A stretch of DNA of 64,000 nt from Macrostomum lignano (GCA_002269645.1 NIVC01000339.1:1-64000), one strand, 5' to 3'. Shown: positions 31,366 to 56,512, numbered from the stretch's first letter. Notes: a model not told the origin generated them from the letters alone. Numbers and translations are program-made.

Positions 31366-32962
31366 CTAGTATCTTAAAAGATGAATGCAGTAAAAAAATA
31401 AGTAGACACGAAAGCAACAGACACGTGAAATAGTAGGATGCATCGCACGGCAGACAGACAGACAATATGTGTGGTGTTATATTTAGCATGCTCATTCATC
31501 GCCAATGGGACGCTGCCGCATAAATATGCATAATTTCATGTATTATGTTCGTATAGCAAATATTCCTCACTCCAGTTAAGCAGATAAATGCTTACGAAAA
31601 CAAATACACGGAGCGGGCCATCGGGTGCTGCTTGGGGATTTTGTCTTTAAAAAAGAAAGTGATAAACAACTCAAATGACGATTCAATATAACGATATAAT
31701 TATTAATAATAGCTTATTAATATTTGTCGGTTAACTTCAGCCTCCCACAGACTGCAAGACAGTAGGCTTTAACACAGAGTCTATAAAATTGCTAATAAAC
31801 AGACACAAACAGTGGCATTAGAAGGGAATGGCTAGCCCGGACGCGTTAGTCGCGCATTGTACTACTCGCTAGTAGCGAAACCGCCGCTATTTTTTCTAAT
31901 ATTAAAAAAACTGTTAGCAAAATTGCATTCCAATACGGCAGAGAATCTCAATATAAACCTGTAATGTCTTTACACACACGGGGCGCTACTGTATACAGGC
32001 AGCGGAGCTGGCGGCGCGCTTCACTCATTTACACGAAGCGCCGGCAGCAGCAAAGAAGAAAGAGAGAAACAAAGGAGCTGTTTTGGGGGGTTGGGGGGGG
32101 GAGGAGACGCCACGCGGACAGGTATAATACAAACCACATATATATAATATAAACACATCATACTAGAGCAGCATTTATACATATAAAGCAATTCTTGTTT
32201 TGGTTTTCTGCAACAAAAAATTGAGAGAAAAAAGAGAAGAAGATCGAAGTAAAAACTGCGGGAACAAAAGCTTAGTATTTGCTAGTTTTACTTATTTATA
32301 CGAAACAACAGAAATACGGGGGTGACATCAATTAATCGATGAAATCAAATCGATCAGTTGAGAATGAGTGACACGCGGACTAAACATCGGTCTGGGGCGC
32401 GGGCATCGGGCCAGCTGCCCAGCTTGATAACACAGAAGGCGCGCGGGGACCAGAAGAAGGCAATGAGAGAGTGGCTAAGCAAGAGTGTAGCGAATATATG
32501 TTTATTACTGTTATCACCTATAGAATTAGTAAATTATTTCACCCAAGCTCTCGGTGGCTCTGTTCAGATCTTATTCTGCACTACTAAGTATGCTTGCAGT
32601 ATTCTGTCTATTGTCAAAATAAACTCAAAAAATGTTAAGCTTGAATATACTCGCACTTTACATAATATACTACTTTTGACAATAAATTGAAGTAGAAAAA
32701 TCGGGTTCTTATTACGATTTGTATTATAAATTAAAAAAAAATTAAATTACACAAGAAAAATCTGATAAATGATTTCTCGATTTGAGGGTTCATATTGTAC
32801 TATTTAGCATTACTCACGAGTACATATGCACAGATACATGGCCGCACAGCTCGTCATCTCACAATACAGGCCCCAACTCCGCTTGCTTTTCAACAGCTAT
32901 TCATTACTTTGCATGGGGAGGTGGCGTGGCCGCTGGGTGCAGGGGAGGTTGACGCGGCGCTC

Positions 32963-35900
32963 TCACGAGGTGCCGCCCGCCCCGCTGCTGCCAACAAAGC
33001 CGCTGCCGGACCCGACGCCGCCCACAACTCCGCTGCTGCCGGCTCCGCCGACGCTGGCACCGCTGGCGGCTCCGGGCACGGCGGCGCCCAGGGTGGTGCC
33101 AACGCTGACGTGATGGTCGGGATAGTTGCAAGGCGACTGGTCAATCTGGTCGTAATAGATTGTCAGCGACTTCTGCTGGCGAGTCCAGGTCTTCGTGTCC
33201 CAGTAGTAATAGAATCCGCGCTCGCCCTGCGGCGCCGGGATCTTCTCAACATTCTGCTGGCAGCGGGTCACCCACAGCTTCTCGCTCTTGATCCAGCGCC
33301 ACTCGCGCCTGTGCAGCTCCTTGGCGGCGCTGAGCTGCAGGTGGTCGCAGGTGCAGTTGTAGAACAGCCAGAACAGCGTCTCGAACTGAAGCTGGTCGAG
33401 CGGAGGCGGCGGCAATTTTTCGCGAATCTGACTGCCAACCAGGTACTCCTGTGGCACCGGATAGTCGATGTACTGCGGCTTGGCTAGGCACTGCTCAGCC
33501 CACGGAGAGCCCAGGCAGGAGTAGATTTCGCTGGGCAAATGCGGGCACAGGGTTCGGAGCATAATGCAGTGTGGTTGAGCATACTGACTAACAAGTAACT
33601 GAATGCGATTGGATATAGAGCGAATTCGGGCATCTGGGTCACCGATTTGGGTATCCGGGTCACTGATTTGGGCATCTGGGTCACCGATTTGGGCATCTGG
33701 GTCACGGATTTGGGTATCTGGGTCACCGATTTGGGCATCTGGGTCACGGATTTAGGTATCTGGGTCACCGATTTGGGCATCTGGGTCACCGATTTGGGCA
33801 TCTGGGTCACGGATTTAGGTATCTGGGTCACCGATTTGGGCATCTGGGTCACCGATTTGGGCATCTGGGTCACCGATTTGGGCATCTGGGTCACTGATTT
33901 GGGCATCTGGATCACTGACTTGGGCATCTGGGTCACCGATTTGGGCATCTGGGTCACCGATTTGGGCATCTGGGTCACCGATTTGGGCATCTGGGTCACC
34001 GATTTGGGCATCTGGGTCACCGATTTGGGCATCTGGGTCACTGATTTGGGCATCTGGGTCACCGATTTGGGCATCTGGGTCACCGATTTGGGCATCTGGG
34101 TCACCGATTTGGGCATCTGGGTCACCGATTTGGGAATCTGGGTCACCGACTTGGGCATCTGGGTCACCGATTTGGGCATCTGGGTCACCGATTTGGGCAT
34201 CTGGGTCACCGATTTGGGTATCCAGATCACTGATTTAGGCATCTGGGTCACTGATTTGGGTGGGTATCTGGGTTACCGATTTGGTTATCTGGGTTACCGA
34301 TTTGGGTATCTGGGTTACCGATTCGGGTGGGTATCTGGGTTACCGATTTGGATCTGGGTCACCGATTTGGATATCTGGGTCACCCATTCGGGTATCTGGG
34401 TTACCGATTTGGTTATCTGGGTCACCCATTCGGGTATCTGGGTTACCGATTTGGTTATCTGGGTCACCGATTTGGGTATCAGGGTCACCGATTCGGGTAT
34501 CTGGGTTACCGATTTGGGTATCTGGGTTACTGATTTGGGTATCTGGGTTACCGATTTGGGTGGGTATCTGGGTTACCGATTTGGTTATCTGGGTCACCGA
34601 TTTGGGTATCGGGGTCACCGATTCGGGTATCTGGGTTACCAATTTGGGTATCTGGGTTACTGATTTGGGTATCCGGTCACCGATTTGAGTATTCAGGTCA
34701 CCGATTCGGGTATCCGGTCACCGAGTTGGGTATTCAGGTCACCGATTCGGGTATCCGGTCACCGATTTGGGTATCGGGGTCACCGATTCGGGTATCTGGG
34801 TCACCGATTTGGGTACCCAGGTCTCCGATTTGGGTATCCGGGTCACCAATATGCTTTTCAAAGTTATTGATTTGGGTATCGGGGTCACCGATTTGGGTAT
34901 CCTGTCACCGATTTGGGTATTCAGGTCACCGATTCGGGTATCCGGTCACCGAGTTGGGTATTCAGGTCACCGATTCGGGTATCCGGTCTCCGATTTGGGT
35001 ATCCGGGTCACCAATATTCTTTTCAAAGTTATTGATTTGGGTATCGGGGTCATGGATTTAGTATCGGCAGGGTGACTGCTGAAAGCCAAAACCATAGACT
35101 TACGAAGTATTATTCAGCGGCAAGCCCAAAGAGTTGAGGTCGATGCCGGGCGCTATGATAACAAAGTTGGGATTCTCGTCTCCCACTTTTATTAGCGACA
35201 ACAGGCCGATCATGCCGAACTGGTCCCGAACCATGCTCGCCGGGACGCCAGTAATGGAGCCGTTCTGGTGGTACACCACTGTGCTGCGACCCAGCGGTGT
35301 CATGGGGTCCGCTGAGCCGGGCAGACCCGCCGAAGCCGCCGCTGCAGCGGCCGTCCCGCCGTCGGCAACGCTGCCGCCTGTCCCGGACACGCCAGCCGTC
35401 GCTAATGATGCTGAGTTCGGCGGCATGGCGACAGACGATGAGGCTGCAACGGAGCCAGGCGCGGCGGAAGTGGCCGGCTGAGTGCCCGGCAAAGCGGGGA
35501 AATCCTCCTGCTGGATGCTGAACTCCTCGGGTGCTTTGCTAGCCGCGGAAACGAAGTTAATGCGGCCGGACACTCCGGCCGAGGCTGGCCGGCCAAGCAT
35601 GGGAAACTCGGACGGGTCGGGTAGCCGCTTCTGCCCGACAGGGGCCTGCAGCATCAAGCCGGGGATGCTCCGCGCTTGGCTGCCACCGCTGCCGCTGGCC
35701 AAGCCGAGGCCGCTTCCGGGCGGGACGCCGGATGCCAGACGGCCGCTGCCGACGCCGACAATCCCGACGCCGCTGCCGCCGGCGCCTTGTAGCTTGCCCG
35801 AGGCGCTGATCTGGCGCGAATAAGTCGCCATGGACGAGGCTGGCGAGCCAACGGACGACAGCAGGCCGTCGCTGAAGTCTGCTGACGAATGGTCGAATAG

Positions 35901-36880
35901 CTTACTGGCGCGCTGCTGGTCCGGCTGCGAGGACGGGCCCGGCGCTCCCAGCTGCTGGGGGAACAGGCCGGAGTTCGGCTGCTTGCCCACTGCCGAGTTC
36001 AGTGGCATGGAGGATTGAAACCCTGCACCAATTATTCCGCCGCCGCCACCGCTGCTCGAGGACGGCACTGGGCTGGTGTTGCGCATCAGGCCGGGGAAGC
36101 CGCCGCCATCTGGCGACCAGCCGTATTGGTCCGTGTTGCTGAAGGCTCTGGGGACGGGGATGGGCGATTAGGAGATATACTACTGATACAGTAGCTTATA
36201 AATGATAATCCAGAGATACTACTGATACAGTAGCTTATAAATGATAATCCAGAGATACTACTGATACAGTAGCTTATAAATGATAATGTAGCGATACTAC
36301 TGATACAGTAGCTTATAAATGATAATCCAGAGATACTACTGATACAGTAGCTTATAAATGATAATCCAGAGATACTACTGATACAGTAGCTTATAAATGA
36401 TAATGTAGCGATACTACTGATACAGTAGCTTATAAATGATAATGTAGCGATACTACTGATACAGTAGCTTATAAATGATAATCCAGAGATACTACTGATA
36501 CAGTAGCTTATAAATGATAATCTAGAGATACTACTGATACAGTAGCTTATAAATGATAATCCAGAGATACTACTGATACAGTAGCTTATAAATGATAATC
36601 TAGCGATACTACTGATACAGTAGCTTATAAATGATAATCCAGAGATACTACTGATACAGTAGCTTATAAATGATAATCCAGAGATACTACTGATACAGTA
36701 GCTTATAAATGATAATCCAGAGATACTACTGATACAGTAGCTTATAAATGATAATCCAGAGATACTACTTATACAGTAGCTTATAAATGATAATCTAAAG
36801 ATACTACTTATACAGTGGTTTAGTTATATCAGTTATACAGGTGGAAAAGTCAAGCGAACTCACGGTCCTAATCCTGCCAT
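32963..36880 (-). CDS. CNOT2: CCR4-NOT subunit 2 (Regena-like), 542 aa
   Basis: Exons 36880-36864 (MAGLG + phase 2), 36147-35104 and 33530-32963 total 1629 nt in frame; DQFGMIGLLSLI..GIDLNSLGLPLN, then NOT-box FETLFWLFY..AAKELHRREWRW. Confidence 0.9.
33610..35075. repeat. 21-bp minisatellite (GGTCACCGATTTGGGCATCTG) filling a CNOT2 intron
   Basis: Tandem array, homogeneous on the left and more degenerate on the right. Confidence 0.97.
36172..36815. repeat. 39-bp minisatellite (GATACTACTGATACAGTAGCTTATAAATGATAATCCAGA) filling a CNOT2 intron
   Basis: About 16 copies with period 39; internal mini-hairpin TACTG-ATA-CAGTA. Confidence 0.97.
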
Positions 36881-39739
36881 TGGATGGTTGAATTGTTGCG
36901 CATGGAATAATGGCAAGGCGCTGGGTTCAATGCGAGGCTGCACTTGGAATTCAGGCTGAAAATGCAATTAAAAAACTGTAATTAAAATAAACTATAGAAA
37001 TCCTATGTATACTTGTAAAAGGCGAAACTTGATGTAGGAACAAAAGATAAAATAAACAGTAGATCCAATGCTAATAGGATTCCTGGATGCTAAGGGAAAT
37101 TCAGATAAATTTTATGGCTAAAAACCTTGACACCAGGGGTAATGTATTTTTAAGGGCTGCTATTTTTTAACCAATAGGCTCACATCTTTACTTTTTATTC
37201 AATGAAATGCGCCTAGACAAATGCTAACCCCATCCCTCCAAGTTTGTGGGAATTAAGGCCCCCAAATCCATGTTCTATAAACTTGATTCTTAATGCTCCA
37301 CTTCCTTTAAAGCCTTAAATCTGAGCACAACATGCTTGCAATTGCTCAAGCACCCCTGCCTTTCCTCAAGATGTGCCATATATTGTCCCATCTTTAACTC
37401 CCTCCCTTCATTTATGAGTTACAAGCCTACAAACCCAAGTATTTTTGACTCTTCAAACTAAAACATCTGTTCTCCAGTCCATCTAAAGCCTTCTCAAATT
37501 TAAACAATATGCTCAATTGTTATGCCTCATTCCTCTGCCTTTCCTCAGAACACAACTGTCTCTAATTCCTTCCCGATATTAATGAGCAAAAATCCTGCAC
37601 CAACACAAAACCCATGAATAGTTCCAAATATTTTCCTTATATCAAAGCAACTATTCTATATTGAAATTATCAACTTTCTAACTCTGATTTGAACCAAATA
37701 TTTGGTTGATTGGATTTGATTCTAAATATTCTGAATATTCATTGATTCAATACTCAATGATTCAAGTCTAGTCATATATATAGGCCTATTTGTTATCTTT
37801 ATATATATACCATATTGTCTTATTTTTTATGAAGTTAATTAATATACTAATAGTTTGATATAATAAAATGGTATACATAAAATCTATAGATATTGCATAA
37901 AATGATGATTTGAGGTTTTGGCATATTGAGGTTATATCTTAAATAATAGTCTAGACCAATGTACATGGTTTACTAGAAAGTGTTTATGGTTAGCAATGCT
38001 AACCATTTGCTAACCATTGAGATTAAACACAGTACTCTTTTAAAAAGGTTTTTAAGTTAAATCTTTTAGATAGACCATATACAAGCTTTTTAGACTTTAG
38101 ATGTTACAACTTCTTTATAGTTTCTATAAAGAATTTTAAATAAAAAACTAAATAGTATTTATAAGATAAAAATACCAAAAAATAAACATTAAAAAATCTA
38201 GTAAATATTTTAACTTGCTAGCAAATCTTATTATTTAAATAATTGATTTTTTGCCATTTAACTATTTTAGTCATAGACATTTTGCTTAGACTTTGTAGTC
38301 TATATAGATCATTTTGCCCCAAAGCAAAATCAACCATAGAATAGTTTGGCCATATTAATTAAAAATTAATAGATTCAAACAAGCTAAAATAGTAAGGATA
38401 TACATAGTAGCAACTCTACTGAGATTTTGAAAGTTGCACTATGGTAATTTTTGCCAAAACACTCTTAGTTTTATTAATATTTTTATTAAACTTTTTTACT
38501 TAGGCTGACCAATTTCTATGTCCAATATATCATTTTTTAGCTTTTCTATTTCTAATCTGTTGATAAGAAAAGGTACAGGTCACATTGGCAAAAAGAAAAT
38601 TTAGTAAGTCATTTTGGAAAAAGTCAGTTCAATGAAAGTCATTTCAGAGATCAGAGATTCAGAGAAAGTCAGTCATAAAAAGTTATAATAAAACATCTTT
38701 AAACAAACAAATTACAATTGTATTATGCTATTGATATCTAGGATATTTATTTAGGATAGTTTAGTATATTAAAAGTTATTTCTTAACTGAAAAAACAAAG
38801 CTAATTTACTAAAAAAGTAAAATGATATAGTCTATCAAAAATTATAAAAATATTTAATAAAAAAATTGGTTAAAAGTTGAAAAAAGTTTAATAAATGTCT
38901 TTAGAATTTTATATTTAATTTTGTTAGAAATTATCATTTGTGTTTAATCAAAAATAAAGAAACTTTAATTTTTGTGAATATCACGATTTTAATATGGTTT
39001 TTTCATAAAGAAAATAATATAATTTATTATAATCCCAATGAAGACCAGAAATTTATTTATAAAGTTTTTATCTATGAAATTTTGGCAATCCTTTACTTTT
39101 GCACATTTAATTATTTTTTTAAATAATGACTTTTTTAATTACTGCAAGTAAATATTTGAACTTGCGTAAAGGTAAGATGTCTACTAGTTTAAGGTGGCCA
39201 AAACCTACTATTGCTCTGCTATTTAAGTTTTGGCCATAGACAATTGCTCCTTGTTTTTTTGAAAAGGCAGTAAGACAAAAAGGATAGGTGTTGCATTCTT
39301 TGGTATATGCATGCTAGTGGAGTGGTTAACTCTATTATTGATTTTTATTACTAGCCTATGACCACCCCTCTCTATCAGTCTTTTCCCATGTATGCACTTG
39401 TGAGGATGGCTACATACTTGTAGACTGCCCAGCTAGACATACTAAATATATATGAGTCAGGAAGCCACTGGCCCGAGCACCTTTCTCTTTCTTAGTTGTT
39501 TGAAGATAGAATCTCAGAGTCTCAGAACATAATTGTTATTTTTACAACAATGGGTATTCTGAGAGATTTATTGCCTTGCTTGTTTTCTTATCAATCTTGA
39601 ACAATAACTATTGTGCAATCATGGCTGGATACCCTATAGTACCCACTAGTATAATTCCAATTGCAGATATTCAACCTGCAGCAAACCTTATATAACTTAT
39701 ACCTAACAATGTGTAAGCTTACTTATAGCCACCAACATG

Positions 39740-40400
39740 CCCACAATGCTGGACTCAGGCCTCAATCCAAAAAGGGTCCATTTTTGAGTCTAGCCATCTG
39801 CCTTTGACCCAGAAAATTAATATTATATACTAGTAGGCAACGTAGGCCAAGCAAGAAGACACCTAGTAACAATATGAAAATATTACTATTTAGACCATTA
39901 TGGATTGGCAAAACTTTATTTACAATATCTATAGTTAGTATCTGCAAGATTATCTACTGCAGCTAGAGCTAGGAGGGCTTAGTGTCAATGTTAAAATCAA
40001 TGAAAGCTATTTCTTTTATTGCAAATAGGCCCTGCTATCAAGGCCAATGTTGGCTAGACCAGTAAGTTTAAAGTATAATCAAATTGCACTCTAACTGCTG
40101 CACAATGGTGGCCATACTAGATTGTAGTGCAACTAGCATCTTGCCCCGAGTGCAATAGTACATGCTGCCTGGGATTATAGATACAAGTAGCAAGCATACA
40201 ATCAGCTGCCTAACTATCTAACAATTAACTACTAGCTGCATTTTATTGACCCCAACAACTTAAATATTTATATTAATACAATTAAGGACATATGAGCCTA
40301 TGCTAAGACCTATTTTAAGGCTATTTATGGCATATCCAAGGCCCTGTTCAATATCCACCTAGATGAGTTTCTATAGCATTATTGCTACTTGTGCAACACC
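39740..40400 (+). pseudogene. Merlin (IS1016/ISXO2-like) DDE transposase relic with heavy C>T/G>A decay
   Basis: Hand translation gives TCPQC..SIQKGSIFESSHLPL, TIMDWQNFI, LGGLSVNVKINES (cf. GGPG..VEIDES), ILDCSATSILP (cf. VPDRSAATLLP), K*QAYNQL, TINY*LHFIDP..YINTIKDI* (cf. TVNH..FVDP..HTNTIEG.W) and HLDEFL*H (cf. YLDEF.WR). Confidence 0.85.
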
Positions 40401-43400
40401 TTCAGCAACATTTTTCTGGGTGATACACTATTATAATACCTAATACAACCAAACATGATATAATAAACTTGCTAACTATTATTAAACTTTTATTGAAACT
40501 TTGTTCAAAATTTATTAATGTTACATTTATAATATATAATTAAATCTGCAAAAGTAAAAGATTGCCAATTTTTTTATTTTCTTTCTAGTTTATTATATTT
40601 GCTTTTAAACTCTAATATAATCCATGGTCAAGGTGCGCCATGTGCGCCGCAACAAATCCTTTATAATTTTTTAACTGTGCACCATGCGCCAAAAAATTTA
40701 TGTATTACATTGACATATGGCGCACAATAAATTTTCTTCTGCGCCATTTGCACTGTGTATGCCAAAAATCCTTTGTGTGTACCACAATTTTGTATGAAAT
40801 CTATCACCTTCCTGATTGTAGGATATAATTATATTGCAAATTTAGTCATTTGCAAAAACTTTTTAAAATATATTTTATTTAGATATTTGCAAGTTTTAGG
40901 ACCTTTATTGAAATATTTACAATATAAGATATAAACTAAAAATTGATATACTTTGCTTTATTCTAATAATATTCTTAATTAATAAACCTCAATAACAATA
41001 TTATTATATTTAAGTTATATAGAGCATACCTAGGCCGAAGCAAAAATCTATTCTTATTATAGCATTATATAGGCTTAGATATTTTAGAGGAAAAAATTAG
41101 GCCTACAGTCCCTACACCAAACAAAATTAGCAATATAATAGGAAAGATAATAAAATACAAAACAAATAGAATAATAGATATTAAGATGTGATATAAAATA
41201 TGTGTAGCCCCTAGCTGCTAAGCTAGGCTAGGGCCAAGGCCTAGGTAGGCCTAAACTAATCTAAAATTAGGCCCTAATTATTTTTTTAACAATCAATTTG
41301 CAATATAATAAGGGCCTTATCAAGGAAAATAGATTGATATTCAAGATATCCAAAGATCATTAGGAATGAAAAGTTTTGCATCCTCCACTGCACAGTGCAC
41401 AGTCTAGATCATACATAGACTGGTATATCTGTTGCTTGCTTGCTATAGTTGGCATTGGATTGGACACTGGCAACGATAAAAAAATTGATATAAATATGCT
41501 ATGTTTCGTTTTATTATTATGCCTGCGCTTTATTTTTTCGAATCAGGTGTTTTGGACGGATACAAAAATGTCAGATTATTCTTCAAGAAACCCACACATT
41601 TCCAATTAATGCAAAGAATTCTTTGGGCTTGGTTTTTGGGGGATTCAGTCTTCCATGACTTGTGATTCTTTTCTTATGTTTATTATCATAAAAATTACTT
41701 CTCTAAAACTTGCTTGTTTAAAATTTCTAACATTTCTATCAGGCTCAGAAATGTTTAGGAACAGACCGTCCAAGCTGCTGGTTGAACAAATAAAGAATCG
41801 CTGAATCGCTGATTTTAGAAAAAATAATTTTTTTGGATTTTTTTAACTTTTAAACAAAACTTACGTTGTCTAGAACAAGAAATAGATTGAAATAGTTTCG
41901 TAGCAGAAGATTTAAAATGTTTGCATTTATTTACCACTATGCCAAGAAACAAATTTGTTTCTAATTGCTCCTACTCGTACGCCGATTTGATGATTAACTT
42001 TTCAACACTACATTCAGAATATATTGTTGCAATTATTGATTATACTTAAGGAATCTTACAGCTACTGCCAACTGGGTTTTATAAACGATTGTCTCAAAAT
42101 AGTGCGAGCAAATTTTGTTTAAGGGTTTAGTAACTTAATAAGTAGCAAAAATTTTTATGCTGCAAAGCCAGAGCGAGAGACATGGCACAGAGGGCGACGC
42201 GCAGATAAATAAGCGGGTGAGCAAACACCCCCCACCCCACGAAGGGGTAGAGAGGAAGGCGCACAAAGCGGCACAAGTACAGCGCGAGCTGGAGTGGATG
42301 GCTAACACCCATTTCACTTCACTCATAAAGGAGCCCTAAGAGAAATGGAAGGCATTATACCCATTACAATATTGTTACTATTTGCTGTAGTACACAATTA
42401 TTACCTATCACAGTAATGCTACTTTTGTACATTTAAGTACATAAAACATGCGATTTGCCTATAGTTCTGTACTACATTTATACTCATAGTATTCCTACAC
42501 AAGTATGTATGTTATGTATGTTTATAACAAGTAGTTAAGTAAAGACCGCTTGGTTTTCCTGAAAGACATGATTTAAGACCATCGGTGACATCGGTCCTAA
42601 ACTATAGCTCATGAGTATAAGGAAGTAGAGAACGAAAACGATACCCAAAATATCCTCATTGGAAACAAAGTCGACTAACTAAGGCGGGTAGTCTTAGTTA
42701 AGTACAAAATAAACGACGATACAAAAAGTACGTTTTAGTTTCTGATACGAGCGTATTTAGATTTGCAACCATAACAGAGTTAAAAGCTTTACGTTAGATG
42801 AAAACGTATATTTAAGTGCTGAAATATTTTAATTAAATTTTATACCGTTACAGGTATAGAGATTAGAGATATCCCAGTAGTAGCAAACAAGGCCGTCCCA
42901 AAATTAATAAGAAATAAAGATGCGCTCTTAGCTAGAAACAGTTAAGCATAACGTGCAACAATAAAAGCGAAGCCAAACAAAAATCGCAGCAATAAAGTTG
43001 TAACAAAACGACACAACAGGAACATTAATTTTATAAATATAAATAGCTAAAACTTCTTTCGGTCTGATAAATATGCATCAACAACGATAACTTCTAGCAT
43101 AGCGAAATGCTACTTCCACATACACTAAGTATCTAAACAGGTAACGCATAATAGAAACAATTTTGACTACCAACTAACGACCAGAAGAGAGCATCGTGCA
43201 GCTACAATCAAGCTGGGCTTAGAGGTGGAGCATACCGTATAATACTTTGCCACGCATTAACGAATAAGCAGACGACCACACGAGTTAAGACAATTTATCT
43301 GCTCGCAAGCTGACGGACAACTTTGATGTTTTTCTATTTCTTCTCTAGAACTCATATACTCAGCAACATTGAAACACGCCACACTTTTCCTCAGTGAGCA

Positions 43401-44080
43401 GTGTCTCGATCATCGTCTATCACCTGGCCAACCATTTTGAGATGAAAAAATGCTTGGAAAAAAAACAATGACAACCGGGCGGAAGCTTCAATCCATCCAA
43501 TTTTCGCCCTCCGATCGTCCCAAGTCCCTCCTCACTCAGCCCAACTCTGCATCGCGTGGCGCAAGTTGTGTCACTCAAAAATCAACACTGAGCTGGAATT
43601 TACTGCGCACTCTCAAAGGTGGCGACTTTTTAATGTTGTTGAGTATATAATCCAGAGCAACACCAATAGCTAAAACTAACTTTATGTTTAAGCGGCAACG
43701 GCATTAAAAAGCTAGAATGGATTCGAAGTAATGACAAGGATAATACGGCAAAGTTCAGTCCGCTGTTAAAATTGTTTAAGCAATTGCGCTGCCAGAAAAC
43801 ATGCAAGTGGGACACAAAACAATAAAGTAAATTTTAACAAATTAAAAACTAAGAGAAGTACATGCGGACAGCCGATTCGCTATGAGGCCAGTTTTATAGT
43901 AAACCTTTTACATTGTACATTACAAACTCATATTTTTCGTGTTAATTTACATTATTATTTTATGGTTTTGCAGTTCGCTAACAGTCTGACCTATGAACTC
44001 GATTTTTTGGTTTGTTAAAGTCTAAACACATCCTAATTAGATTCGCGATTAAGAGTAAAAAAGTGCGCCACTTGTTGCAT

Positions 44081-44608
44081 TTACGAGCGCACCCCGGATG
44101 CAGCATTTTCTGCTACAATTGGAGCAGCAGCAGTTGGAGCATCCACAGCAGCAGGTGGAGCGGCGGCAGCTTCTCCGCCATTGTTGACTGCCTGAGGCTG
44201 AGCTGCTGCCTTAGTGGCAGCGGCAGCGGCGGCCACCTCGGTGGAATCGGCCGGCGGCAGGTCGGACTTGGCCACCTGGACGAAGCCAACAAGAAGGTCG
44301 CCATCCGCGCCCTGAGCAGCCACGGCGGCTTTGACCTCGGCCGAGTCGGCGGGCGGAACGTCAGCGCCGTTTACCATTTCGAAATCATCGGTGGCAACAT
44401 CCCTGACTGCAGCTGGCGGCTCCGCCGGCGCCTTAGCAGGCGATGTGGACCGCGGCTTCGCCGACGGAGTTTTCTGCTTTTTAGCCGGAGATGGGGCGGC
44501 AGGCGGCGGTGGCGGAGGCTGCGGCCGGGATGCCAGACGGCCGGAGCGGCGCTGCGGCTGGGCGTTGGCCGAGTCGGTAGCGGCGGCGGCAGAACGTTTT
44601 CGTGGCAT
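44081..44608 (-). CDS. 175-aa Pro/Ala-rich, probably disordered protein with basic N-terminus (MPRKRS..QRRSGRLAS), left copy
   Basis: GC-rich, codon-like ORF in AT-rich surroundings; upstream TTTCAG acceptor; internal repeat DVPPADSAEV/DLPPADSTEV. May be exon 1 of a longer gene (possible donor at 44092). Confidence 0.65.
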   Translation of the reverse strand: MPRKRSAAAATDSANAQPQRRSGRLASRPQPPPPPPAAPSPAKKQKTPSAKPRSTSPAKAPAEPPAAVRDVATDDFEMVNGADVPPADSAEVKAAVAAQGADGDLLVGFVQVAKSDLPPADSTEVAAAAAATKAAAQPQAVNNGGEAAAAPPAAVDAPTAAAPIVAENAASGVRS

Positions 44609-45081
44609 GTTGCTTATAAAATCAGCTGATTGCAATTTACAGCTGAGCTCTATGGCTGAAAGTTGATGAAAACAGCGCATTACTCAAATTTGACTCAAAT
44701 TCCTAATTGCTTAACAGCAAAAAGTCAAGCTACTTTGTCAGATTTTTACTGCCCGTACATAAATACTTTTTAGTCGATGAACTGGAATTTAAATGTTGGA
44801 ATTGCTTTGCCATTTGTCATTCTAAGTCAAAACTCAAGATGCCAAGATGCCAAGATGTTTTGACTTAGAATGACAAATGGCAAAGCAATTCCAACATTTA
44901 AATTCCAGTTCATCGACTAAAAAGTATTTATGTACGGGCAGTAAAAATCTGACAAAGTAGCTTGACTTTTTGCTGTTAAGCAATTAGGAATTTGAGTCAA
45001 ATTTGAGTAATGCGCTGTTTTCATCAACTTTCAGCCATAGAGCTCAGCTGTAAATTGCAATCAGCTGATTTTATAAGCAAC

Positions 45082-45609
45082 ATGCCACGAAAACGTTCTG
45101 CCGCCGCCGCTACCGACTCGGCCAACGCCCAGCCGCAGCGCCGCTCCGGCCGTCTGGCATCCCGGCCGCAGCCTCCGCCACCGCCGCCTGCCGCCCCATC
45201 TCCGGCTAAAAAGCAGAAAACTCCGTCGGCGAAGCCGCGGTCCACATCGCCTGCTAAGGCGCCGGCGGAGCCGCCAGCTGCAGTCAGGGATGTTGCCACC
45301 GATGATTTCGAAATGGTAAACGGCGCTGACGTTCCGCCCGCCGACTCGGCCGAGGTCAAAGCCGCCGTGGCTGCTCAGGGCGCGGATGGCGACCTTCTTG
45401 TTGGCTTCGTCCAGGTGGCCAAGTCCGACCTGCCGCCGGCCGATTCCACCGAGGTGGCCGCCGCTGCCGCTGCCACTAAGGCAGCAGCTCAGCCTCAGGC
45501 AGTCAACAATGGCGGAGAAGCTGCCGCCGCTCCACCTGCTGCTGTGGATGCTCCAACTGCTGCTGCTCCAATTGTAGCAGAAAATGCTGCATCCGGGGTG
45601 CGCTCGTAA
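45082..45609 (+). CDS. Mirror copy of the 175-aa Pro/Ala-rich gene
   Basis: Reverse complement of 44081-44608 within the palindrome; identical translation in the ORF track. Confidence 0.65.
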   Translation: MPRKRSAAAATDSANAQPQRRSGRLASRPQPPPPPPAAPSPAKKQKTPSAKPRSTSPAKAPAEPPAAVRDVATDDFEMVNGADVPPADSAEVKAAVAAQGADGDLLVGFVQVAKSDLPPADSTEVAAAAAATKAAAQPQAVNNGGEAAAAPPAAVDAPTAAAPIVAENAASGVRS

Positions 45610-48600
45610 ATGCAACAAGTGGCGCACTTTTTTACTCTTAATCGCGAATCTAATTAGGATGTGTTTAGACTTTAACAAACCAAAAAATCGAGTTCATAGG
45701 TCAGACTGTTAGCGAACTGCAAAACCATAAAATAATAATGTAAATTAACACGAAAAATATGAGTTTGTAATGTACAATGTAAAAGGTTTACTATAAAACT
45801 GGCCTCATAGCGAATCGGCTGTCCGCATGTACTTCTCTTAGTTTTTAATTTGTTAAAATTTACTTTATTGTTTTGTGTCCCACTTGCATGTTTTCTGGCA
45901 GCGCAATTGCTTAAACAATTTTAACAGCGGACTGAACTTTGCCGTATTATCCTTGTCATTACTTCGAATCCATTCTAGCTTTTTAATGCCGTTGCCGCTT
46001 AAACATAAAGTTAGTTTTAGCTATTGGTGTTGCTCTGGATTATATACTCAACAACATTAAAAAGTCGCCACCTTTGAGAGTGCGCAGTAAATTCCAGCTC
46101 AGTGTTGATTTTTGAGTGACACAACTTGCGCCACGCGATGCAGAGTTGGGCTGAGTGAGGAGGGACTTGGGACGATCGGAGGGCGAAAATTGGATGGATT
46201 GAAGCTTCCGCCCGGTTGTCATTGTTTTTTTTCCAAGCATTTTTTCATCTCAAAATGGTTGGCCAGGTGATAGACGATGATCGAGACACTGCTCACTGAG
46301 GAAAAGTGTGGCGTGTTTCAATGTTGCTGAGTATATGAGTTCTAGAGAAGAAATAGAAAAACATCAAAGTTGTCCGTCAGCTTGCGAGCAGATAAATTGT
46401 CTTAACTCGTGTGGTCGTCTGCTTATTCGTTAATGCGTGGCAAAGTATTATACGGTATGCTCCACCTCTAAGCCCAGCTTGATTGTAGCTGCACGATGCT
46501 CTCTTCTGGTCGTTAGTTGGTAGTCAAAATTGTTTCTATTATGCGTTACCTGTTTAGATACTTAGTGTATGTGGAAGTAGCATTTCGCTATGCTAGAAGT
46601 TATCGTTGTTGATGCATATTTATCAGACCGAAAGAAGTTTTAGCTATTTATATTTATAAAATTAATGTTCCTGTTGTGTCGTTTTGTTACAACTTTATTG
46701 CTGCGATTTTTGTTTGGCTTCGCTTTTATTGTTGCACGTTATGCTTAACTGTTTCTAGCTAAGAGCGCATCTTTATTTCTTATTAATTTTGGGACGGCCT
46801 TGTTTGCTACTACTGGGATATCTCTAATCTCTATACCTGTAACGGTATAAAATTTAATTAAAATATTTCAGCACTTAAATATACGTTTTCATCTAACGTA
46901 AAGCTTTTAACTCTGTTATGGTTGCAAATCTAAATACGCTCGTATCAGAAACTAAAACGTACTTTTTGTATCGTCGTTTATTTTGTACTTAACTAAGACT
47001 ACCCGCCTTAGTTAGTCGACTTTGTTTCCAATGAGGATATTTTGGGTATCGTTTTCGTTCTCTACTTCCTTATACTCATGAGCTATAGTTTAGGACCGAT
47101 GTCACCGATGGTCTTAAATCATGTCTTTCAGGAAAACCAAGCGGTCTTTACTTAACTACTTGTTATAAACATACATAACATACATACTTGTGTAGGAATA
47201 CTATGAGTATAAATGTAGTACAGAACTATAGGCAAATCGCATGTTTTATGTACTTAAATGTACAAAAGTAGCATTACTGTGATAGGTAATAATTGTGTAC
47301 TACAGCAAATAGTAACAATATTGTAATGGGTATAATGCCTTCCATTTCTCTTAGGGCTCCTTTATGAGTGAAGTGAAATGGGTGTTAGCCATCCACTCCA
47401 GCTCGCGCTGTACTTGTGCCGCTTTGTGCGCCTTCCTCTCTACCCCTTCGTGGGGTGGGGGGTGTTTGCTCACCCGCTTATTTATCTGCGCGTCGCCCTC
47501 TGTGCCATGTCTCTCGCTCTGGCTTTGCAGCATAAAAATTTTTGCTACTTATTAAGTTACTAAACCCTTAAACAAAATTTGCTCGCACTATTTTGAGACA
47601 ATCGTTTATAAAACCCAGTTGGCAGTAGCTGTAAGATTCCTTAAGTATAATCAATAATTGCAACAATATATTCTGAATGTAGTGTTGAAAAGTTAATCAT
47701 CAAATCGGCGTACGAGTAGGAGCAATTAGAAACAAATTTGTTTCTTGGCATAGTGGTAAATAAATGCAAACATTTTAAATCTTCTGCTACGAAACTATTT
47801 CAATCTATTTCTTGTTCTAGACAACGTAAGTTTTGTTTAAAAGTTAAAAAAATCCAAAAAAATTATTTTTTCTAAAATCAGCGATTCAGCGATTCTTTAT
47901 TTGTTCAACCAGCAGCTTGGACGGTCTGTTCCTAAACATTTCTGAGCCTGATAGAAATGTTAGAAATTTTAAACAAGCAAGTTTTAGAGAAGTAATTTTT
48001 ATGATAATAAACATAAGAAAAGAATCACAAGTCATGGAAGACTGAATCCCCCAAAAACCAAGCCCAAAGAATTCTTTGCATTAATTGGAAATGTGTGGGT
48101 TTCTTGAAGAATAATCTGACATTTTTGTATCCGTCCAAAACACCTGATTCGAAAAAATAAAGCGCAGGCATAATAATAAAACGAAACATAGCATATTTAT
48201 ATCAATTTTTTTATCGTTGCCAGTGTCCAATCCAATGCCAACTATAGCAAGCAAGCAACAGATATACCAGTCTATGTATGATCTAGACTGTGCACTGTGC
48301 AGTGGAGGATGCAAAACTTTTCATTCCTAATGATCTTTGGATATCTTGAATATCAATCTATTTTCCTTGATAAGGCCCTTATTATATTGCAAATTGATTG
48401 TTAAAAAAATAATTAGGGCCTAATTTTAGATTAGTTTAGGCCTACCTAGGCCTTGGCCCTAGCCTAGCTTAGCAGCTAGGGGCTACACATATTTTATATC
48501 ACATCTTAATATCTATTATTCTATTTGTTTTGTATTTTATTATCTTTCCTATTATATTGCTAATTTTGTTTGGTGTAGGGACTGTAGGCCTAATTTTTTC

Positions 48601-49289
48601 CTCTAAAATATCTAAGCCTATATAATGCTATAATAAGAATAGATTTTTGCTTCGGCCTAGGTATGCTCTATATAACTTAAATATAATAATATTGTTATTG
48701 AGGTTTATTAATTAAGAATATTATTAGAATAAAGCAAAGTATATCAATTTTTAGTTTATATCTTATATTGTAAATATTTCAATAAAGGTCCTAAAACTTG
48801 CAAATATCTAAATAAAATATATTTTAAAAAGTTTTTGCAAATGACTAAATTTGCAATATAATTATATCCTACAATCAGGAAGGTGATAGATTTCATACAA
48901 AATTGTGGTACACACAAAGGATTTTTGGCATACACAGTGCAAATGGCGCAGAAGAAAATTTATTGTGCGCCATATGTCAATGTAATACATAAATTTTTTG
49001 GCGCATGGTGCACAGTTAAAAAATTATAAAGGATTTGTTGCGGCGCACATGGCGCACCTTGACCATGGATTATATTAGAGTTTAAAAGCAAATATAATAA
49101 ACTAGAAAGAAAATAAAAAAATTGGCAATCTTTTACTTTTGCAGATTTAATTATATATTATAAATGTAACATTAATAAATTTTGAACAAAGTTTCAATAA
49201 AAGTTTAATAATAGTTAGCAAGTTTATTATATCATGTTTGGTTGTATTAGGTATTATAATAGTGTATCACCCAGAAAAATGTTGCTGAA

Positions 49290-49950
49290 GGTGTTGCACA
49301 AGTAGCAATAATGCTATAGAAACTCATCTAGGTGGATATTGAACAGGGCCTTGGATATGCCATAAATAGCCTTAAAATAGGTCTTAGCATAGGCTCATAT
49401 GTCCTTAATTGTATTAATATAAATATTTAAGTTGTTGGGGTCAATAAAATGCAGCTAGTAGTTAATTGTTAGATAGTTAGGCAGCTGATTGTATGCTTGC
49501 TACTTGTATCTATAATCCCAGGCAGCATGTACTATTGCACTCGGGGCAAGATGCTAGTTGCACTACAATCTAGTATGGCCACCATTGTGCAGCAGTTAGA
49601 GTGCAATTTGATTATACTTTAAACTTACTGGTCTAGCCAACATTGGCCTTGATAGCAGGGCCTATTTGCAATAAAAGAAATAGCTTTCATTGATTTTAAC
49701 ATTGACACTAAGCCCTCCTAGCTCTAGCTGCAGTAGATAATCTTGCAGATACTAACTATAGATATTGTAAATAAAGTTTTGCCAATCCATAATGGTCTAA
49801 ATAGTAATATTTTCATATTGTTACTAGGTGTCTTCTTGCTTGGCCTACGTTGCCTACTAGTATATAATATTAATTTTCTGGGTCAAAGGCAGATGGCTAG
49901 ACTCAAAAATGGACCCTTTTTGGATTGAGGCCTGAGTCCAGCATTGTGGG
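49290..49950 (-). pseudogene. Mirror copy of the Merlin transposase relic
   Basis: Reverse complement of 39740-40400 within the palindrome. Confidence 0.85.
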
Positions 49951-52735
49951 CATGTTGGTGGCTATAAGTAAGCTTACACATTGTTAGGTATAAGTTATAT
50001 AAGGTTTGCTGCAGGTTGAATATCTGCAATTGGAATTATACTAGTGGGTACTATAGGGTATCCAGCCATGATTGCACAATAGTTATTGTTCAAGATTGAT
50101 AAGAAAACAAGCAAGGCAATAAATCTCTCAGAATACCCATTGTTGTAAAAATAACAATTATGTTCTGAGACTCTGAGATTCTATCTTCAAACAACTAAGA
50201 AAGAGAAAGGTGCTCGGGCCAGTGGCTTCCTGACTCATATATATTTAGTATGTCTAGCTGGGCAGTCTACAAGTATGTAGCCATCCTCACAAGTGCATAC
50301 ATGGGAAAAGACTGATAGAGAGGGGTGGTCATAGGCTAGTAATAAAAATCAATAATAGAGTTAACCACTCCACTAGCATGCATATACCAAAGAATGCAAC
50401 ACCTATCCTTTTTGTCTTACTGCCTTTTCAAAAAAACAAGGAGCAATTGTCTATGGCCAAAACTTAAATAGCAGAGCAATAGTAGGTTTTGGCCACCTTA
50501 AACTAGTAGACATCTTACCTTTACGCAAGTTCAAATATTTACTTGCAGTAATTAAAAAAGTCATTATTTAAAAAAATAATTAAATGTGCAAAAGTAAAGG
50601 ATTGCCAAAATTTCATAGATAAAAACTTTATAAATAAATTTCTGGTCTTCATTGGGATTATAATAAATTATATTATTTTCTTTATGAAAAAACCATATTA
50701 AAATCGTGATATTCACAAAAATTAAAGTTTCTTTATTTTTGATTAAACACAAATGATAATTTCTAACAAAATTAAATATAAAATTCTAAAGACATTTATT
50801 AAACTTTTTTCAACTTTTAACCAATTTTTTTATTAAATATTTTTATAATTTTTGATAGACTATATCATTTTACTTTTTTAGTAAATTAGCTTTGTTTTTT
50901 CAGTTAAGAAATAACTTTTAATATACTAAACTATCCTAAATAAATATCCTAGATATCAATAGCATAATACAATTGTAATTTGTTTGTTTAAAGATGTTTT
51001 ATTATAACTTTTTATGACTGACTTTCTCTGAATCTCTGATCTCTGAAATGACTTTCATTGAACTGACTTTTTCCAAAATGACTTACTAAATTTTCTTTTT
51101 GCCAATGTGACCTGTACCTTTTCTTATCAACAGATTAGAAATAGAAAAGCTAAAAAATGATATATTGGACATAGAAATTGGTCAGCCTAAGTAAAAAAGT
51201 TTAATAAAAATATTAATAAAACTAAGAGTGTTTTGGCAAAAATTACCATAGTGCAACTTTCAAAATCTCAGTAGAGTTGCTACTATGTATATCCTTACTA
51301 TTTTAGCTTGTTTGAATCTATTAATTTTTAATTAATATGGCCAAACTATTCTATGGTTGATTTTGCTTTGGGGCAAAATGATCTATATAGACTACAAAGT
51401 CTAAGCAAAATGTCTATGACTAAAATAGTTAAATGGCAAAAAATCAATTATTTAAATAATAAGATTTGCTAGCAAGTTAAAATATTTACTAGATTTTTTA
51501 ATGTTTATTTTTTGGTATTTTTATCTTATAAATACTATTTAGTTTTTTATTTAAAATTCTTTATAGAAACTATAAAGAAGTTGTAACATCTAAAGTCTAA
51601 AAAGCTTGTATATGGTCTATCTAAAAGATTTAACTTAAAAACCTTTTTAAAAGAGTACTGTGTTTAATCTCAATGGTTAGCAAATGGTTAGCATTGCTAA
51701 CCATAAACACTTTCTAGTAAACCATGTACATTGGTCTAGACTATTATTTAAGATATAACCTCAATATGCCAAAACCTCAAATCATCATTTTATGCAATAT
51801 CTATAGATTTTATGTATACCATTTTATTATATCAAACTATTAGTATATTAATTAACTTCATAAAAAATAAGACAATATGGTATATATATAAAGATAACAA
51901 ATAGGCCTATATATATGACTAGACTTGAATCATTGAGTATTGAATCAATGAATATTCAGAATATTTAGAATCAAATCCAATCAACCAAATATTTGGTTCA
52001 AATCAGAGTTAGAAAGTTGATAATTTCAATATAGAATAGTTGCTTTGATATAAGGAAAATATTTGGAACTATTCATGGGTTTTGTGTTGGTGCAGGATTT
52101 TTGCTCATTAATATCGGGAAGGAATTAGAGACAGTTGTGTTCTGAGGAAAGGCAGAGGAATGAGGCATAACAATTGAGCATATTGTTTAAATTTGAGAAG
52201 GCTTTAGATGGACTGGAGAACAGATGTTTTAGTTTGAAGAGTCAAAAATACTTGGGTTTGTAGGCTTGTAACTCATAAATGAAGGGAGGGAGTTAAAGAT
52301 GGGACAATATATGGCACATCTTGAGGAAAGGCAGGGGTGCTTGAGCAATTGCAAGCATGTTGTGCTCAGATTTAAGGCTTTAAAGGAAGTGGAGCATTAA
52401 GAATCAAGTTTATAGAACATGGATTTGGGGGGCCTTAATTCCCACAAACTTGGAGGGATGGGGTTAGCATTTGTCTAGGCGCATTTCATTGAATAAAAAG
52501 TAAAGATGTGAGCCTATTGGTTAAAAAATAGCAGCCCTTAAAAATACATTACCCCTGGTGTCAAGGTTTTTAGCCATAAAATTTATCTGAATTTCCCTTA
52601 GCATCCAGGAATCCTATTAGCATTGGATCTACTGTTTATTTTATCTTTTGTTCCTACATCAAGTTTCGCCTTTTACAAGTATACATAGGATTTCTATAGT
52701 TTATTTTAATTACAGTTTTTTAATTGCATTTTCAG

Positions 52736-52827
52736 CCTGAATTCCAAGTGCAGCCTCGCATTGAACCCAGCGCCTTGCCATTATTCCATGCGCAACAATT
52801 CAACCATCCAATGGCAGGATTAGGACC
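52736..52827 (+). other. Duplicated CNOT2 start exon (orphan copy)
   Basis: TTTTCAG|CCTGAA..ATG(52811)GCAGGATTAGGACC|GTGAGT, the mirror of 36955-36864; the downstream CNOT2 exons are not duplicated. Confidence 0.75.
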
Positions 52828-53539
52828 GTGAGTTCGCTTGACTTTTCCACCTGTATAACTGATATAACTAAACCACTGTATAAGTAGTATCTTTAGATTA
52901 TCATTTATAAGCTACTGTATAAGTAGTATCTCTGGATTATCATTTCAGAATCCCTCTGCTGTTTATCCAATCCCCTCTTTTATTCTTTTCGTCTATTTGA
53001 TTTTTGTGTCCGCTATACTCTATTCGTGTTGTCTTTTCTTTCTTTACACAAAACAAAAAGCTCTTATCGGTTTTTAATCTGTGTTTTTATTTGTAGCAGA
53101 TGCTGTTACACTACTGTGAGTAGACGCGACGTTGTAATTTTCTGCGCGTTTTTTCACTTCGATAATTATAGTGGTGTTTTTTATTATTTTTTATTAAAAA
53201 TCAGTTCTTAAGCTGACCACAGTTTTATTGGGGCTGGGCCATACAGTAAGGCACTCAGCTGTTTCAGACTCGCAGTGTTTTCATATCACAACGAAATTAC
53301 CTTGGTGGGACCAAGCGAATCTGTTAGGTTTGTTATTTCCAACAGTAGATATTTTGTTTGTATCTCAAATCCCAAACCTATTAAAATACATTGTCTCTTT
53401 ATTTAGACTACACAAATATATCACATGTCTCGACATGACCATGCAGCGTGTTTTTGTAGGTTTTGTTCCTAGGCGGAACCAAATTTTCTCTTACAGTTCC
53501 TTTGAATTGCTTTTTAGTGTAGATTTTTAAAGTTTTATC

Positions 53540-54990
53540 CATCACAATCAATGGGAAATATCCATCCCAATCAATGGGAAATACCCATCCCAATCAGTGG
53601 GAAATATCCATCACAATCAATGGAAAAAATCCATCCCAATCAATGGGAAATACCCATCCCAATCAGTGGGAAATATCCATCCCAATCAATGGGAAATACC
53701 CATCCCAATCAGTGGGAAATATCCATCCCAATCAATGGGAAATACCCATCCCAATCAGTGGGAAATATCCATCCCAATCAATGGGAAATACCCATCCCAA
53801 TCAGTGGGAAATATCCATCCCAATCAATGGGAAATACCCATCCCAATCAATGGGAAATATCCATCACAATCAATGGGAAATATCCATCCCAATCAATGGG
53901 AAATACCCATCCCAATCAGTGGGAAATATCCATCACAATCAATGGGAAATATCCATCCCAATCAATGGGAAATACCCATCCCAATCAGTGGGAAATATCC
54001 ATCCCAATCAATGGGAAATATCCATCCCAATCAATGGGAAATATCCATCCCAATCAATGGGAAATATCCATCCCAATCAATGGGAAATACCCATCACAAT
54101 CAATGGGAAATATCCATCCCAATCAATGGGAAATATCCATCCCAATCAATGGGAGTTTTCCATCCCAATCAATGGGAGTTTTCCATCCCAATCAATGGGA
54201 AATACCCATCCCAATCAGATCGAAATATCCATCACAATCAATGGGAAAAATCCATCCCAATCAATGGGAAATATCCATCCCAATCAATGGGAAATATCCA
54301 TCCCAATCATTGGGAAATATCCATCCCAATCAGTGGGAAATACCCATCCCAATCAGTGGGAAATACCCATCCCAATCAGTGGGAAATACCCATCCCAATC
54401 AGTGGGAAATATCCATCCCAATCAGTGGGAAATACCCATCCCAATCAGTGGGAAATACCCATCCCAATCAATGGGAAATATCCATCCCAATCAATGGGAA
54501 ATATCCATCCCAATCATTGGGAAATATCCATCCCAATCAGTGGGAAATATCCATCCCAATCAGTGGGAAATATCCATCCCAATCAGTGGGAAATACCCAT
54601 CCCAATCAGTGGGAAATATCCATCCCAATCAATGGGAAATACCCATCCCAATCATTGGGAGTTATGCATCCCAATCAGTGGGAAATACCCATCCCAATCA
54701 GTGGGAAATATCCATCCCAATCAGTGGGAAATACCCATCCCAATCAGTGGGAAATACCCATCCCAATCAGTGGGAAATACCCATCCCAATCAGTGGGAAA
54801 TATCCATCCCAATCAATGGGAAATACCCATCCCAATCATTGGGAGTTATGCATCCCAATCAGTGGGAAATACCCATCCCAATCAGTGGGAAATACCCATC
54901 CCAATCAATGGGAAATATCCATCCCAATCAATGGGAGTTATGCATCGCAATCAATGGGAGTTTTCCATCACAATCAATGGGAATTGGAGA
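53540..54990. repeat. 23-bp minisatellite (CAATCAATGGGAAATATCCATCC) upstream of PIH1D1
   Basis: About 63 copies; stop-free in all three + frames, which explains the long repetitive ORFs. Confidence 0.97.
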
Positions 54991-55050
54991 GCATCCGATA
55001 TGTATCGATAGCAAACTATTTCGGCACCCACAGAAGCACAAATAGAAAAA

Positions 55051-56464: not shown

Positions 56465-56512
56465 CTTGGCGTGTGTTCGTGTTGTTGCTTTGGTGTGCGC
56501 GACTGTTGGCTG

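Follow-up and report, generated by a model that had tools for sequence, protein, structure and literature searches.

Introduction

In the Tetrahymena ribosomal DNA (rDNA) palindrome and in palindromic gene amplification, a short native inverted repeat near a break seeds a palindrome of many kilobases. Here, we analyzed a 16.2-kb near-perfect palindrome of the flatworm Macrostomum lignano, which lies in a window of 64,000 nt (the whole stretch of DNA under analysis, positions 1-64000 of the 114,755-bp contig NIVC01000339.1 in the assembly Mlig_3_7, GCA_002269645.1). The window shares with Tetrahymena and with palindromic amplification a non-palindromic centre of a few tens of nucleotides, but those palindromes are programmed or selected and end in telomeres or large amplicons, whereas the palindrome in the window is a one-off interstitial structure with no sign of amplification. 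Judged from its sequence, the window most probably represents a very young fold-back inverted duplication combined with an interstitial deletion, in one of three subgenome copies, and we give this reading a probability of roughly 0.7.

The human fold-back inverted duplications (Hermetz et al. 2014, PMC3907307) and the duplication-inversion/deletion (DUP-INV/DEL) products of fork stalling and template switching/microhomology-mediated break-induced replication (FoSTeS/MMBIR) resemble the window in that the original and its inverted copy lie side by side, parted by single-copy spacer DNA. The spacer boundary shows inverted microhomology of 2-8 bp in the human duplications and of 6 bp in the window, and small insertions at some junctions, an adjoining deletion and a second junction of little or no homology are also common to both (PMC3907307). 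The human cases differ in having spacers of 766-70,466 bp, megabase duplications and terminal deletions via a dicentric, in contrast with the 23-nt spacer, the 8.1-kb copy and the interstitial 7-9 kb deletion of the window, where the chromosome continues normally.

In yeast fold-back inversions (Li, Putnam and Kolodner 2020, PMC7467729), a single-stranded 3' end folds back at a short inverted repeat and forms a priming hairpin, and the resolutions proposed there, by strand displacement and template switching or by second-end capture, are like those considered below for the window. The 'short-loop' class of yeast (<15 nt) covers the ancestral 13-nt loop of the window, but the short-loop events occur mainly with defective Mre11-Sae2 and are resolved through long homology, whereas the window comes from a wild type and shows 1-nt microhomology. 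Since the junction features of the window match those of these published fold-back events, we count them in favor of the fold-back reading. The kind of event is already known, and the unusual part is a nearly spacer-less palindrome of this length and near-perfection in an animal genome.

Geometry of the palindrome

A repeat search detected two inverted-repeat blocks, 37248-44833/44857-52442 (7586 nt) and 36746-37266/52425-52945 (521 nt), which are both 100% complementary and separated by one indel alone. When walked base by base, the left arm spans 36746-44833 (8088 nt) and the right arm 44857-52945 (8089 nt), and the sole difference between them is a homopolymer near 37264 of the left arm, which is C5 there and C6 at the corresponding place of the right arm (52427). 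Between the arms lies a non-palindromic spacer of 23 nt (44834-44856), TCAAGATGCCAAGATGCCAAGAT, which can be written as T(CAAGATGC)2CAAGAT. The original prediction, which was made from the sequence of the window, had given 8.1-kb arms with one homopolymer difference, this spacer formula and the coordinates of the palindrome, and the repeat search and the walk found all of them exact.

An exact inverted match of 8 kb cannot arise by chance. The 64-kb window contains no N runs and no scaffolding gap, and no further long inverted repeat was found within it. Rfam and tRNA scans of the window returned no matches, which rules out an rDNA-type or RNA-gene palindrome.

Unrearranged paralogs and the lost segment D

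Mlig_3_7 was built with Canu 1.4 from PacBio continuous long reads (CLR) of the inbred DV1 line, polished by Pilon with Illumina and RNA-seq data, and scaffolded with SSPACE (PMC5730564). It holds three diverged subgenomes, S, L1 and L2, which differ by 1.9-2.4% in single-nucleotide polymorphisms and by very large indels (PMC10733133). In an error-prone and triplicated assembly of this kind, a real rearrangement and an assembly error were both plausible from the outset. Starting from the annotated 190-aa protein of a gene in the arm, denoted as gene X, and from the three-member protein cluster of CNOT2, we reached two paralogous contigs, contig 2286 (NIVC01002286.1; loci L003 and L008) and contig 94 (NIVC01000094.1; loci L006 and L007). 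The CNOT2 cluster has exactly 3 members, on 3 contigs, and this number matches the three reported subgenomes, which argues that the window is a genuine third locus rather than a spare haplotig.

The identity to the arms is 99.2-99.5% for contig 94 and 95-97% for contig 2286. Neither paralog is palindromic, and both have a single arm followed by a segment that we call D, in the order CNOT2 - 39-bp satellite - arm - short loop - D - 590-bp flank - 23-bp satellite - PIH1 region, where CNOT2 is on the minus strand and PIH1 on the plus strand. The size of D is 6.77 kb in contig 2286 (L003 3063-9829) and 9.36 kb in contig 94 (L007 4619-13974). D carries the gene of the c-Myc-binding protein, MYCBP, on the plus strand, and the MYCBP protein is present on two contigs only, which are the two paralogs of the same assembly. 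D has no match anywhere in the window, where the inverted arm copy replaces it, and the order and orientation are unchanged on both sides: CNOT2 and an SH3-SH2 gene are kept on the left, and PIH1 and a 383-aa gene on the right. The conserved synteny extends at least 11 kb beyond the inverted copy, including 4 kb across PIH1 that is 100% identical to contig 94. The ancestral state, the sequences of both junctions, the lost segment and the preserved synteny are direct observations, and the elements they define are as follows.

36173-36816, no strand: 39-bp satellite array of 16.5 copies, with which the left arm is continuous
36746-44833, no strand: left arm, the original copy, continuous with the native left flank (39-bp satellite, rest of CNOT2) and collinear with the paralogs
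44827-44832, plus strand: TCAAAA, left half of the native inverted repeat; the paralogs read GTCAAAAC TCAAGATGCCAA TTTTGA ATGCC
44834-44845, plus strand: native part of the spacer, the ancestral hairpin loop TCAAGATGCCAA, identical beside the arm in L006, L007 and L003
44846-44857, plus strand: 12-nt insertion GATGCCAAGATG, 1.5 extra tandem copies of the native 8-mer GATGCCAA
44857-52945, no strand: right arm, the inverted copy, which sits where the ancestral D segment was
52940-52951, no strand: outer junction (J2) at 52945/52946, unit 2 of the inverted satellite joined to the native flank with 1-nt (A) microhomology
52946-53535, plus strand: native 590-bp flank, ancestrally right of D, from the three-way alignment

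To estimate the age of the copy, we used the three-way count of changes in the arm, which gave 15 window-specific, 22 contig-94-specific and 229 contig-2286-specific changes. Considering the 229 changes of contig 2286 against the 15 and 22 of the others, the window groups closely with contig 94 as its sister, with contig 2286 as the outgroup. All of the ~15 substitutions of the window lineage in the arm are common to both arms and there are no arm-to-arm substitutions, so the copy appears to be younger than ~10% of the split from contig 94, barring gene conversion between the arms.

Several further differences were seen among the three copies. The D segment of contig 94 has an extra stretch of ~1.27 kb relative to that of contig 2286. 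The C5/C6 site varies in the paralogs too, with CCCCC in contig 2286 (L003) and CCCCCG in contig 94 (L006). In contig 2286 (L008), the PIH1 region is present at 93-97% identity without an annotated PIH1 gene. The comparison of the window with contig 94 (window 54946-58946 against L007 15516-19516, window 38500-41500 against L006) shows a mosaic where multi-kb tracts of 100% identity lie beside tracts with 2-4% divergence. Such a pattern points to gene conversion or recombination among the subgenome copies, or to a partial collapse of the assembly. Two Logan contigs with MYCBP (L009 and L010, from SRR28338163 and SRR28338165) were considered as a hidden third M. lignano copy and rejected: they are complementary DNA (cDNA) with 98% protein identity and only 85% nucleotide identity to M. 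lignano, and presumably come from another Macrostomum or a related flatworm species.

Sequence of the central junction

At the centre (J1), both paralogs read ...CTAAGTCAAAAC TCAAGATGCCAA TTTTGA ATGCCAGG..., and the window reads ...CTAAGTCAAAAC TCAAGATGCCAA GATGCCAAGATG TTTTGA CTTAGAATG.... In both paralogs, TCAAAA and TTTTGA enclose a 13-nt loop as a native 6-bp inverted repeat, and it is precisely here that the window switches to the mirrored arm. Within these loci, a stem of at least 6 bp occurs at 0.05-0.07% of positions when the loop length is fixed, and at 2.5-2.9% of positions if the loop length is left free within 3-50 nt. The stability of the native hairpin is low, at -2.2 kcal/mol, and does not exceed that of shuffled sequence, which suggests that the repeat served as a priming microhomology and not as a structural hot spot.

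The native loop, which accounts for 11-12 nt of the spacer, is asymmetric and present only once, in the orientation of the left arm, indicating that the left arm is the original and the right arm the copy. The rest of the spacer is the 12-nt insertion, the last G of which doubles as the first base of the right arm. Without the insertion, the sequence is that of the paralogs to the base, and the 8-mer is triplicated in window-derived loci only, with no triplication in the paralog loci L003, L006, L007 and L008. The spacer had originally been predicted to be a slippage scar; this holds for the 12 of its 23 nt that are extra copies of the 8-mer, and the other 11-12 nt are the native hairpin loop. 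MAFFT offered an alternative alignment, where the distal part of the spacer is placed on TGGCATCCTGGCATT with two mismatches and a 5-nt deletion, and we rejected it as less parsimonious than a clean 12-nt tandem insertion.

Sequence of the outer junction and the right flank

At J2, the native flank is ...GGGATTCTG(A)TTCCAG..., the satellite partner is ...GCTTAT(A)AATGATAATCC..., and the product is GGGATTCTGAAATGATAATCC. The BLAST match to the window picks up again exactly at 52945 for both L003 and L007. The arm-proximal satellite units at 36746-36816 are the template of the outer end of the copy (52875-52945), so that the right arm retains the ~1.8-2 innermost units and then runs into unrelated sequence. 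A right end that breaks inside the 39-bp satellite with no target-site duplication had already been described, and the break was indeed found at 52945/52946, where no target-site duplication is present.

To the right of J2, 8 window-specific changes (6 substitutions and two 2-nt indels) fall within ~310 bp (52946-53260). Beyond this cluster, such changes become scarce, with 1 over a further ~290 bp and close to none over the 4 kb that follow. The cluster could reflect mutagenesis associated with the breakpoint, or an older haplotype patch. We dropped the idea that it is a signature of error-prone synthesis, as the arm itself has a comparable cluster at 38196-38238 and the newly made arm shows no errors.

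Proposed mechanism

Two inverted copies around a short single-copy spacer, an unduplicated arrangement in relatives, inverted microhomology at the spacer boundary, the lost D segment and a second junction of low homology are all seen here, as expected of a fold-back event. From these junctions we infer the order of the steps, the replicative or break-repair setting, and the existence of the structure in worm DNA. A DNA 3' end heading rightwards out of the arm would have stopped just past TTTTGA, and the site may have been a fork that had stalled or collapsed, or a break that had undergone resection. This end may have paired with TCAAAA, located 13 nt further back either on its own strand or on the lagging-strand template; extension in the opposite direction would then have produced a reversed copy of 8.1 kb of the arm. 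The new strand would have left the arm template inside the second unit of the 39-bp satellite and been joined by 1-nt microhomology to the original template or to the second break end, on the far side of D.

By the fork route, the event would amount to two template switches in the style of FoSTeS/MMBIR. By the break route, it would consist of hairpin-primed synthesis, strand displacement and second-end capture. The data do not separate the two routes. The 12-nt slippage insertion could have arisen during the event, before it or after it, and a later origin would make it a centre modification. The net change is that D is missing together with one of the three MYCBP copies, and that gene X and the 5' exon of CNOT2 are duplicated. 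The original prediction had proposed a very recent fold-back duplication with a template switch as one of its routes, and this is supported by the two unrearranged paralogs and by a centre that falls on a native 6-bp inverted repeat.

Real rearrangement or artefact

Several points weigh against a real fold-back duplication. The palindrome is known here from the sequence of one assembly and not from reads; within the searchable collections, gene X, MYCBP and CNOT2 were found in this assembly only, and short open reading frames (ORFs) crossing the centre or J2, which were looked up for independent Logan contigs, are not on record. In mice, yeast and bacteria, a long palindrome with a very short spacer is unstable, so that a fixed case of 16 kb is less likely a priori. 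Error-prone synthesis of the whole tract should leave errors in the new arm, where there are none, and the changes in the flank are clustered. The perfect identity of the arms is partly forced, as the assembler and Pilon cannot separate the reads of the two arms. On Mlig_3_7, REAPR scored 64% of the bases as error-free and called 872 fragment-coverage errors (PMC5730564), and 93% of M. lignano read pairs have more than one mapping place (PMC10733133). Finally, the palindromes in the Adineta vaga AV13 draft genome proved to be artefacts (PMC8494291).

The most serious alternative is an assembly artefact, where the true locus would be arm - D - flank and the second arm would come from chimeric or fold-back PacBio reads or from an error of Canu or Pilon. 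The many errors reported for this combination of CLR, Canu 1.4 and Pilon, the multi-mapping of most reads and the dependence of both junctions on this one assembly speak for it. So does the sole arm difference, as homopolymer length is a typical residual long-read error; the C5/C6 difference may be a polishing residue, produced by mis-polishing with cross-mapped reads, rather than a true difference. Reads of D, being nearly identical to those of contig 94, could have been absorbed there. The spurious palindromes of A. vaga AV13 set a precedent and, like the present one, are perfect or near-perfect palindromes in a polyploid-like invertebrate assembly, although their source was the scaffolding of phased haplotypes (PMC8494291). 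Palindromic reads that follow whole-genome amplification (PMC6218980) are a further case, with chimeras of multiple displacement amplification as their source. Unlike these spurious palindromes, the one in the window is gap-free, has syntenic flanks and a second local junction that restores the orientation, and its arms, while identical, are distinct from the nearest paralog.

The sequence of the two junctions also argues against such an artefact. A read with a missed adapter gives the arm, the adapter and the mirrored arm and ends at the insert end, whereas no SMRTbell adapter was found within 3 mismatches. A hairpin read would give the loop and its mirrored loop, and the centre instead holds one asymmetric native loop and a templated insertion. 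The palindrome is internal to the 114.8-kb contig, without gaps and with the correct synteny on both sides. The partners at J2 share 1 nt, so misjoining by overlap cannot make J2, which must be in the reads. On the ancestral map, the distance from the centre to J2 is 6.8-9.4 kb, and a random ligation partner in the 764-Mb assembly would have a chance of ~10^-5 of falling there; random ligation would not join partners 7-9 kb apart and so oriented that synteny is restored. Furthermore, there is no third contig bearing MYCBP, and the count of 3 CNOT2 to 2 MYCBP fits a real loss of D. Because two independent, local and complementary junctions would be needed, we regard an artefact as unlikely. The fold-back read chimera that the original prediction held to be a serious alternative is accordingly weakened, by the absence of an adapter, the native asymmetric loop and the second junction at a syntenic flank, but it keeps its place as the first rival of the fold-back duplication.

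An intermediate case would be that J2 and the inverted arm are real, either as an inversion haplotype or as a duplication that keeps D as its spacer, and that only the 23-bp centre is artefactual, through a fold-back joining two haplotypes or skipping D. A single artefactual junction would be enough here, inversions between paralogous M. lignano chromosomes have been reported (PMC10733133), and the D reads could be collapsed into contig 94. However, an inversion haplotype predicts ...GGCATTCAAAATTGGCATCTTGA at the inner end of the right arm, where the contig has ...GATGCCAAGAT, which is the loop in left-arm orientation plus the 12-nt insertion. The native inverted repeat and the templated insertion are moreover the footprint of a junction made by a polymerase, though this is possible in vitro too. 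We consider a half-real palindrome improbable.

The original prediction had also named breakage-fusion-bridge, where a broken chromatid fuses with its sister and the dicentric later breaks. A head-to-head inverted duplication is its classical footprint and the karyotype of M. lignano is unstable, but breakage-fusion-bridge leaves a terminal deletion or foreign or telomeric sequence and usually a large stepped amplification. In the window, the inverted copy is only 8.1 kb and is followed by native flank, the arm is present only twice, and the distal part (590-bp flank, PIH1 and the next gene) is retained in its normal order, with an interstitial loss of 6.8-9.4 kb. This contradicts breakage-fusion-bridge, which is very improbable.

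Least credible of all is a foldback or terminal-inverted-repeat mobile element or an ampliconic palindrome of old age that selection maintains and gene conversion keeps uniform: the arm identity of >99.9% does resemble sex-chromosome palindromes and conversion could hide its age, but there is no target-site duplication, the arms consist of host genes in ancestral order (gene X, CNOT2 exon, satellite), gene X is confined to three paralogous loci, the lineage substitutions are shared by both arms, and the spacer is 23 nt compared with kilobases in the known cases. The palindromes P1-P8 of the human Y and those of the primate X (PMC8327919) are similar in their near-identical arms of at least 8 kb and their head-to-head duplicated genes, but they have kilobase spacers, are conserved between species and undergo gene conversion, whereas the palindrome of the window is absent from the 99.5%-identical sister copy.

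Genes in and near the arms

The genes that are duplicated by the palindrome are located as follows.

44081-44653, minus strand: gene X copy 1, annotated coding sequence of 190 aa, 175 aa from the ATG at 44608, with an HMGN-like N-terminus
45037-45609, plus strand: gene X copy 2, exact mirror of copy 1
36864-36955, minus strand: first annotated exon of the CNOT2-like gene BOX15_Mlig016430g1 (VQPRIEPSALPLFHAQQFNHPMAGLGP), inside the left arm, with its splice signals read from the sequence
52736-52827, plus strand: orphan mirror copy of the CNOT2 exon, exact, with no gene annotated on it

Gene X lies ~180 bp from the centre, and its two copies form a head-to-head pair with 383 bp between them, both transcribed away from the centre. 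It is present at three paralogous loci only. The start of the protein, MPRKRS...QRRSGRLASRP, resembles the nucleosome-binding motif of HMGN, where the Pfam match to HMG14_17 (E=0.033) is below the cut-off; HMGN proteins are not known outside vertebrates. A first homology search with gene X returned no matches, probably due to its biased composition. A later exhaustive search revealed a small family with 19 representative homologues (P0135-P0153), which belongs to no Pfam family and has a common N-terminus, MPR(K/R)..RR.SARIAA, and a conserved block, DFE.V....VPP.DS.EV.AA.S.QGEDG.LLV.FVQV.KDE.P.

Between gene X and the outer end, the arm consists of ~7 kb of AT-rich non-coding DNA. The remainder of the CNOT2-like gene lies to the left of the palindrome. 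The orphan CNOT2 exon points towards the PIH1-domain gene at 55051 and is located upstream of it.

Elsewhere in the window, a tandem segmental duplication (1-2249 and 5476-8588) contains an ankyrin-repeat gene (286 and 285 aa) and its neighbor, which is a 475-aa ORF in one copy and is split into 190 + 112 aa in the other. Two mutually similar, intact single-exon ORFs are found at 14197-15522 (minus strand, 441 aa) and 19098-20489 (plus strand, 463 aa), of which the former matches DUF3504 and, weakly, QRICH1. We take DUF3504 to be linked to domesticated Crypton tyrosine-recombinase transposons. TRAF-type zinc-finger paralogs at 10743-11588 and 12274-13380 adjoin these DUF3504-type ORFs. Introns and intergenic stretches in 22297-35012 and 53536-63755 harbor long minisatellite arrays (period 18-49 bp), of which there are at least 13, including 23932-25482, 25700-26644, 27208-27991, 29513-31361 and 33624-35012 on the left and 53536-54983, 57302-57915 and 58953-60478 on the right. 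In the six-frame list, read-through of these minisatellite repeats accounts for many of the long ORFs.

Implications

Effects on the promoter use of gene X, chimeric transcripts and fragility of the centre are possible consequences of the arrangement. The long hairpin RNA that had originally been suggested is not expected, because the gene X copies run outward and no annotated transcript crosses the centre. The cruciform extrusion suggested alongside it would be a real potential on paper only.

If the palindrome is an artefact, a widely used reference is mis-assembled at this point, so that one MYCBP copy is hidden and a gene is falsely shown in duplicate. If it is real, it is an unusually clean fold-back duplication with deletion, where the ancestral sequence is known to the base from two paralogs of the same genome and the stem, the loop, the slippage insertion, the exit point from the template and the lost gene can all be read directly. 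As transgenesis and inbred lines are available for this flatworm, the heritable stability of the palindrome is open to experiment.

It is rather doubtful that the palindrome is at once real, transmitted through the germline and stable in the DV1 line, which would point to unusually weak processing of hairpins and cruciforms or to a stabilizing insertion at the centre. In that case, a metazoan would tolerate a 16.2-kb perfect palindrome with a 23-nt centre, a kind of structure that quickly suffers breakage or deletion of its centre in mouse, yeast and bacteria. Either the processing of hairpins and cruciforms would be weak in this neopolyploid and karyotypically unstable flatworm, or the 12-nt insertion would be a first 'centre modification', and fold-back template switching would be a regular contributor to the large indel divergence between the subgenomes. 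Taken together, a real palindrome would provide a concrete route by which genes are lost, as one of three MYCBP copies, and gained, as a second gene X and the orphan CNOT2 exon, in a young polyploid.

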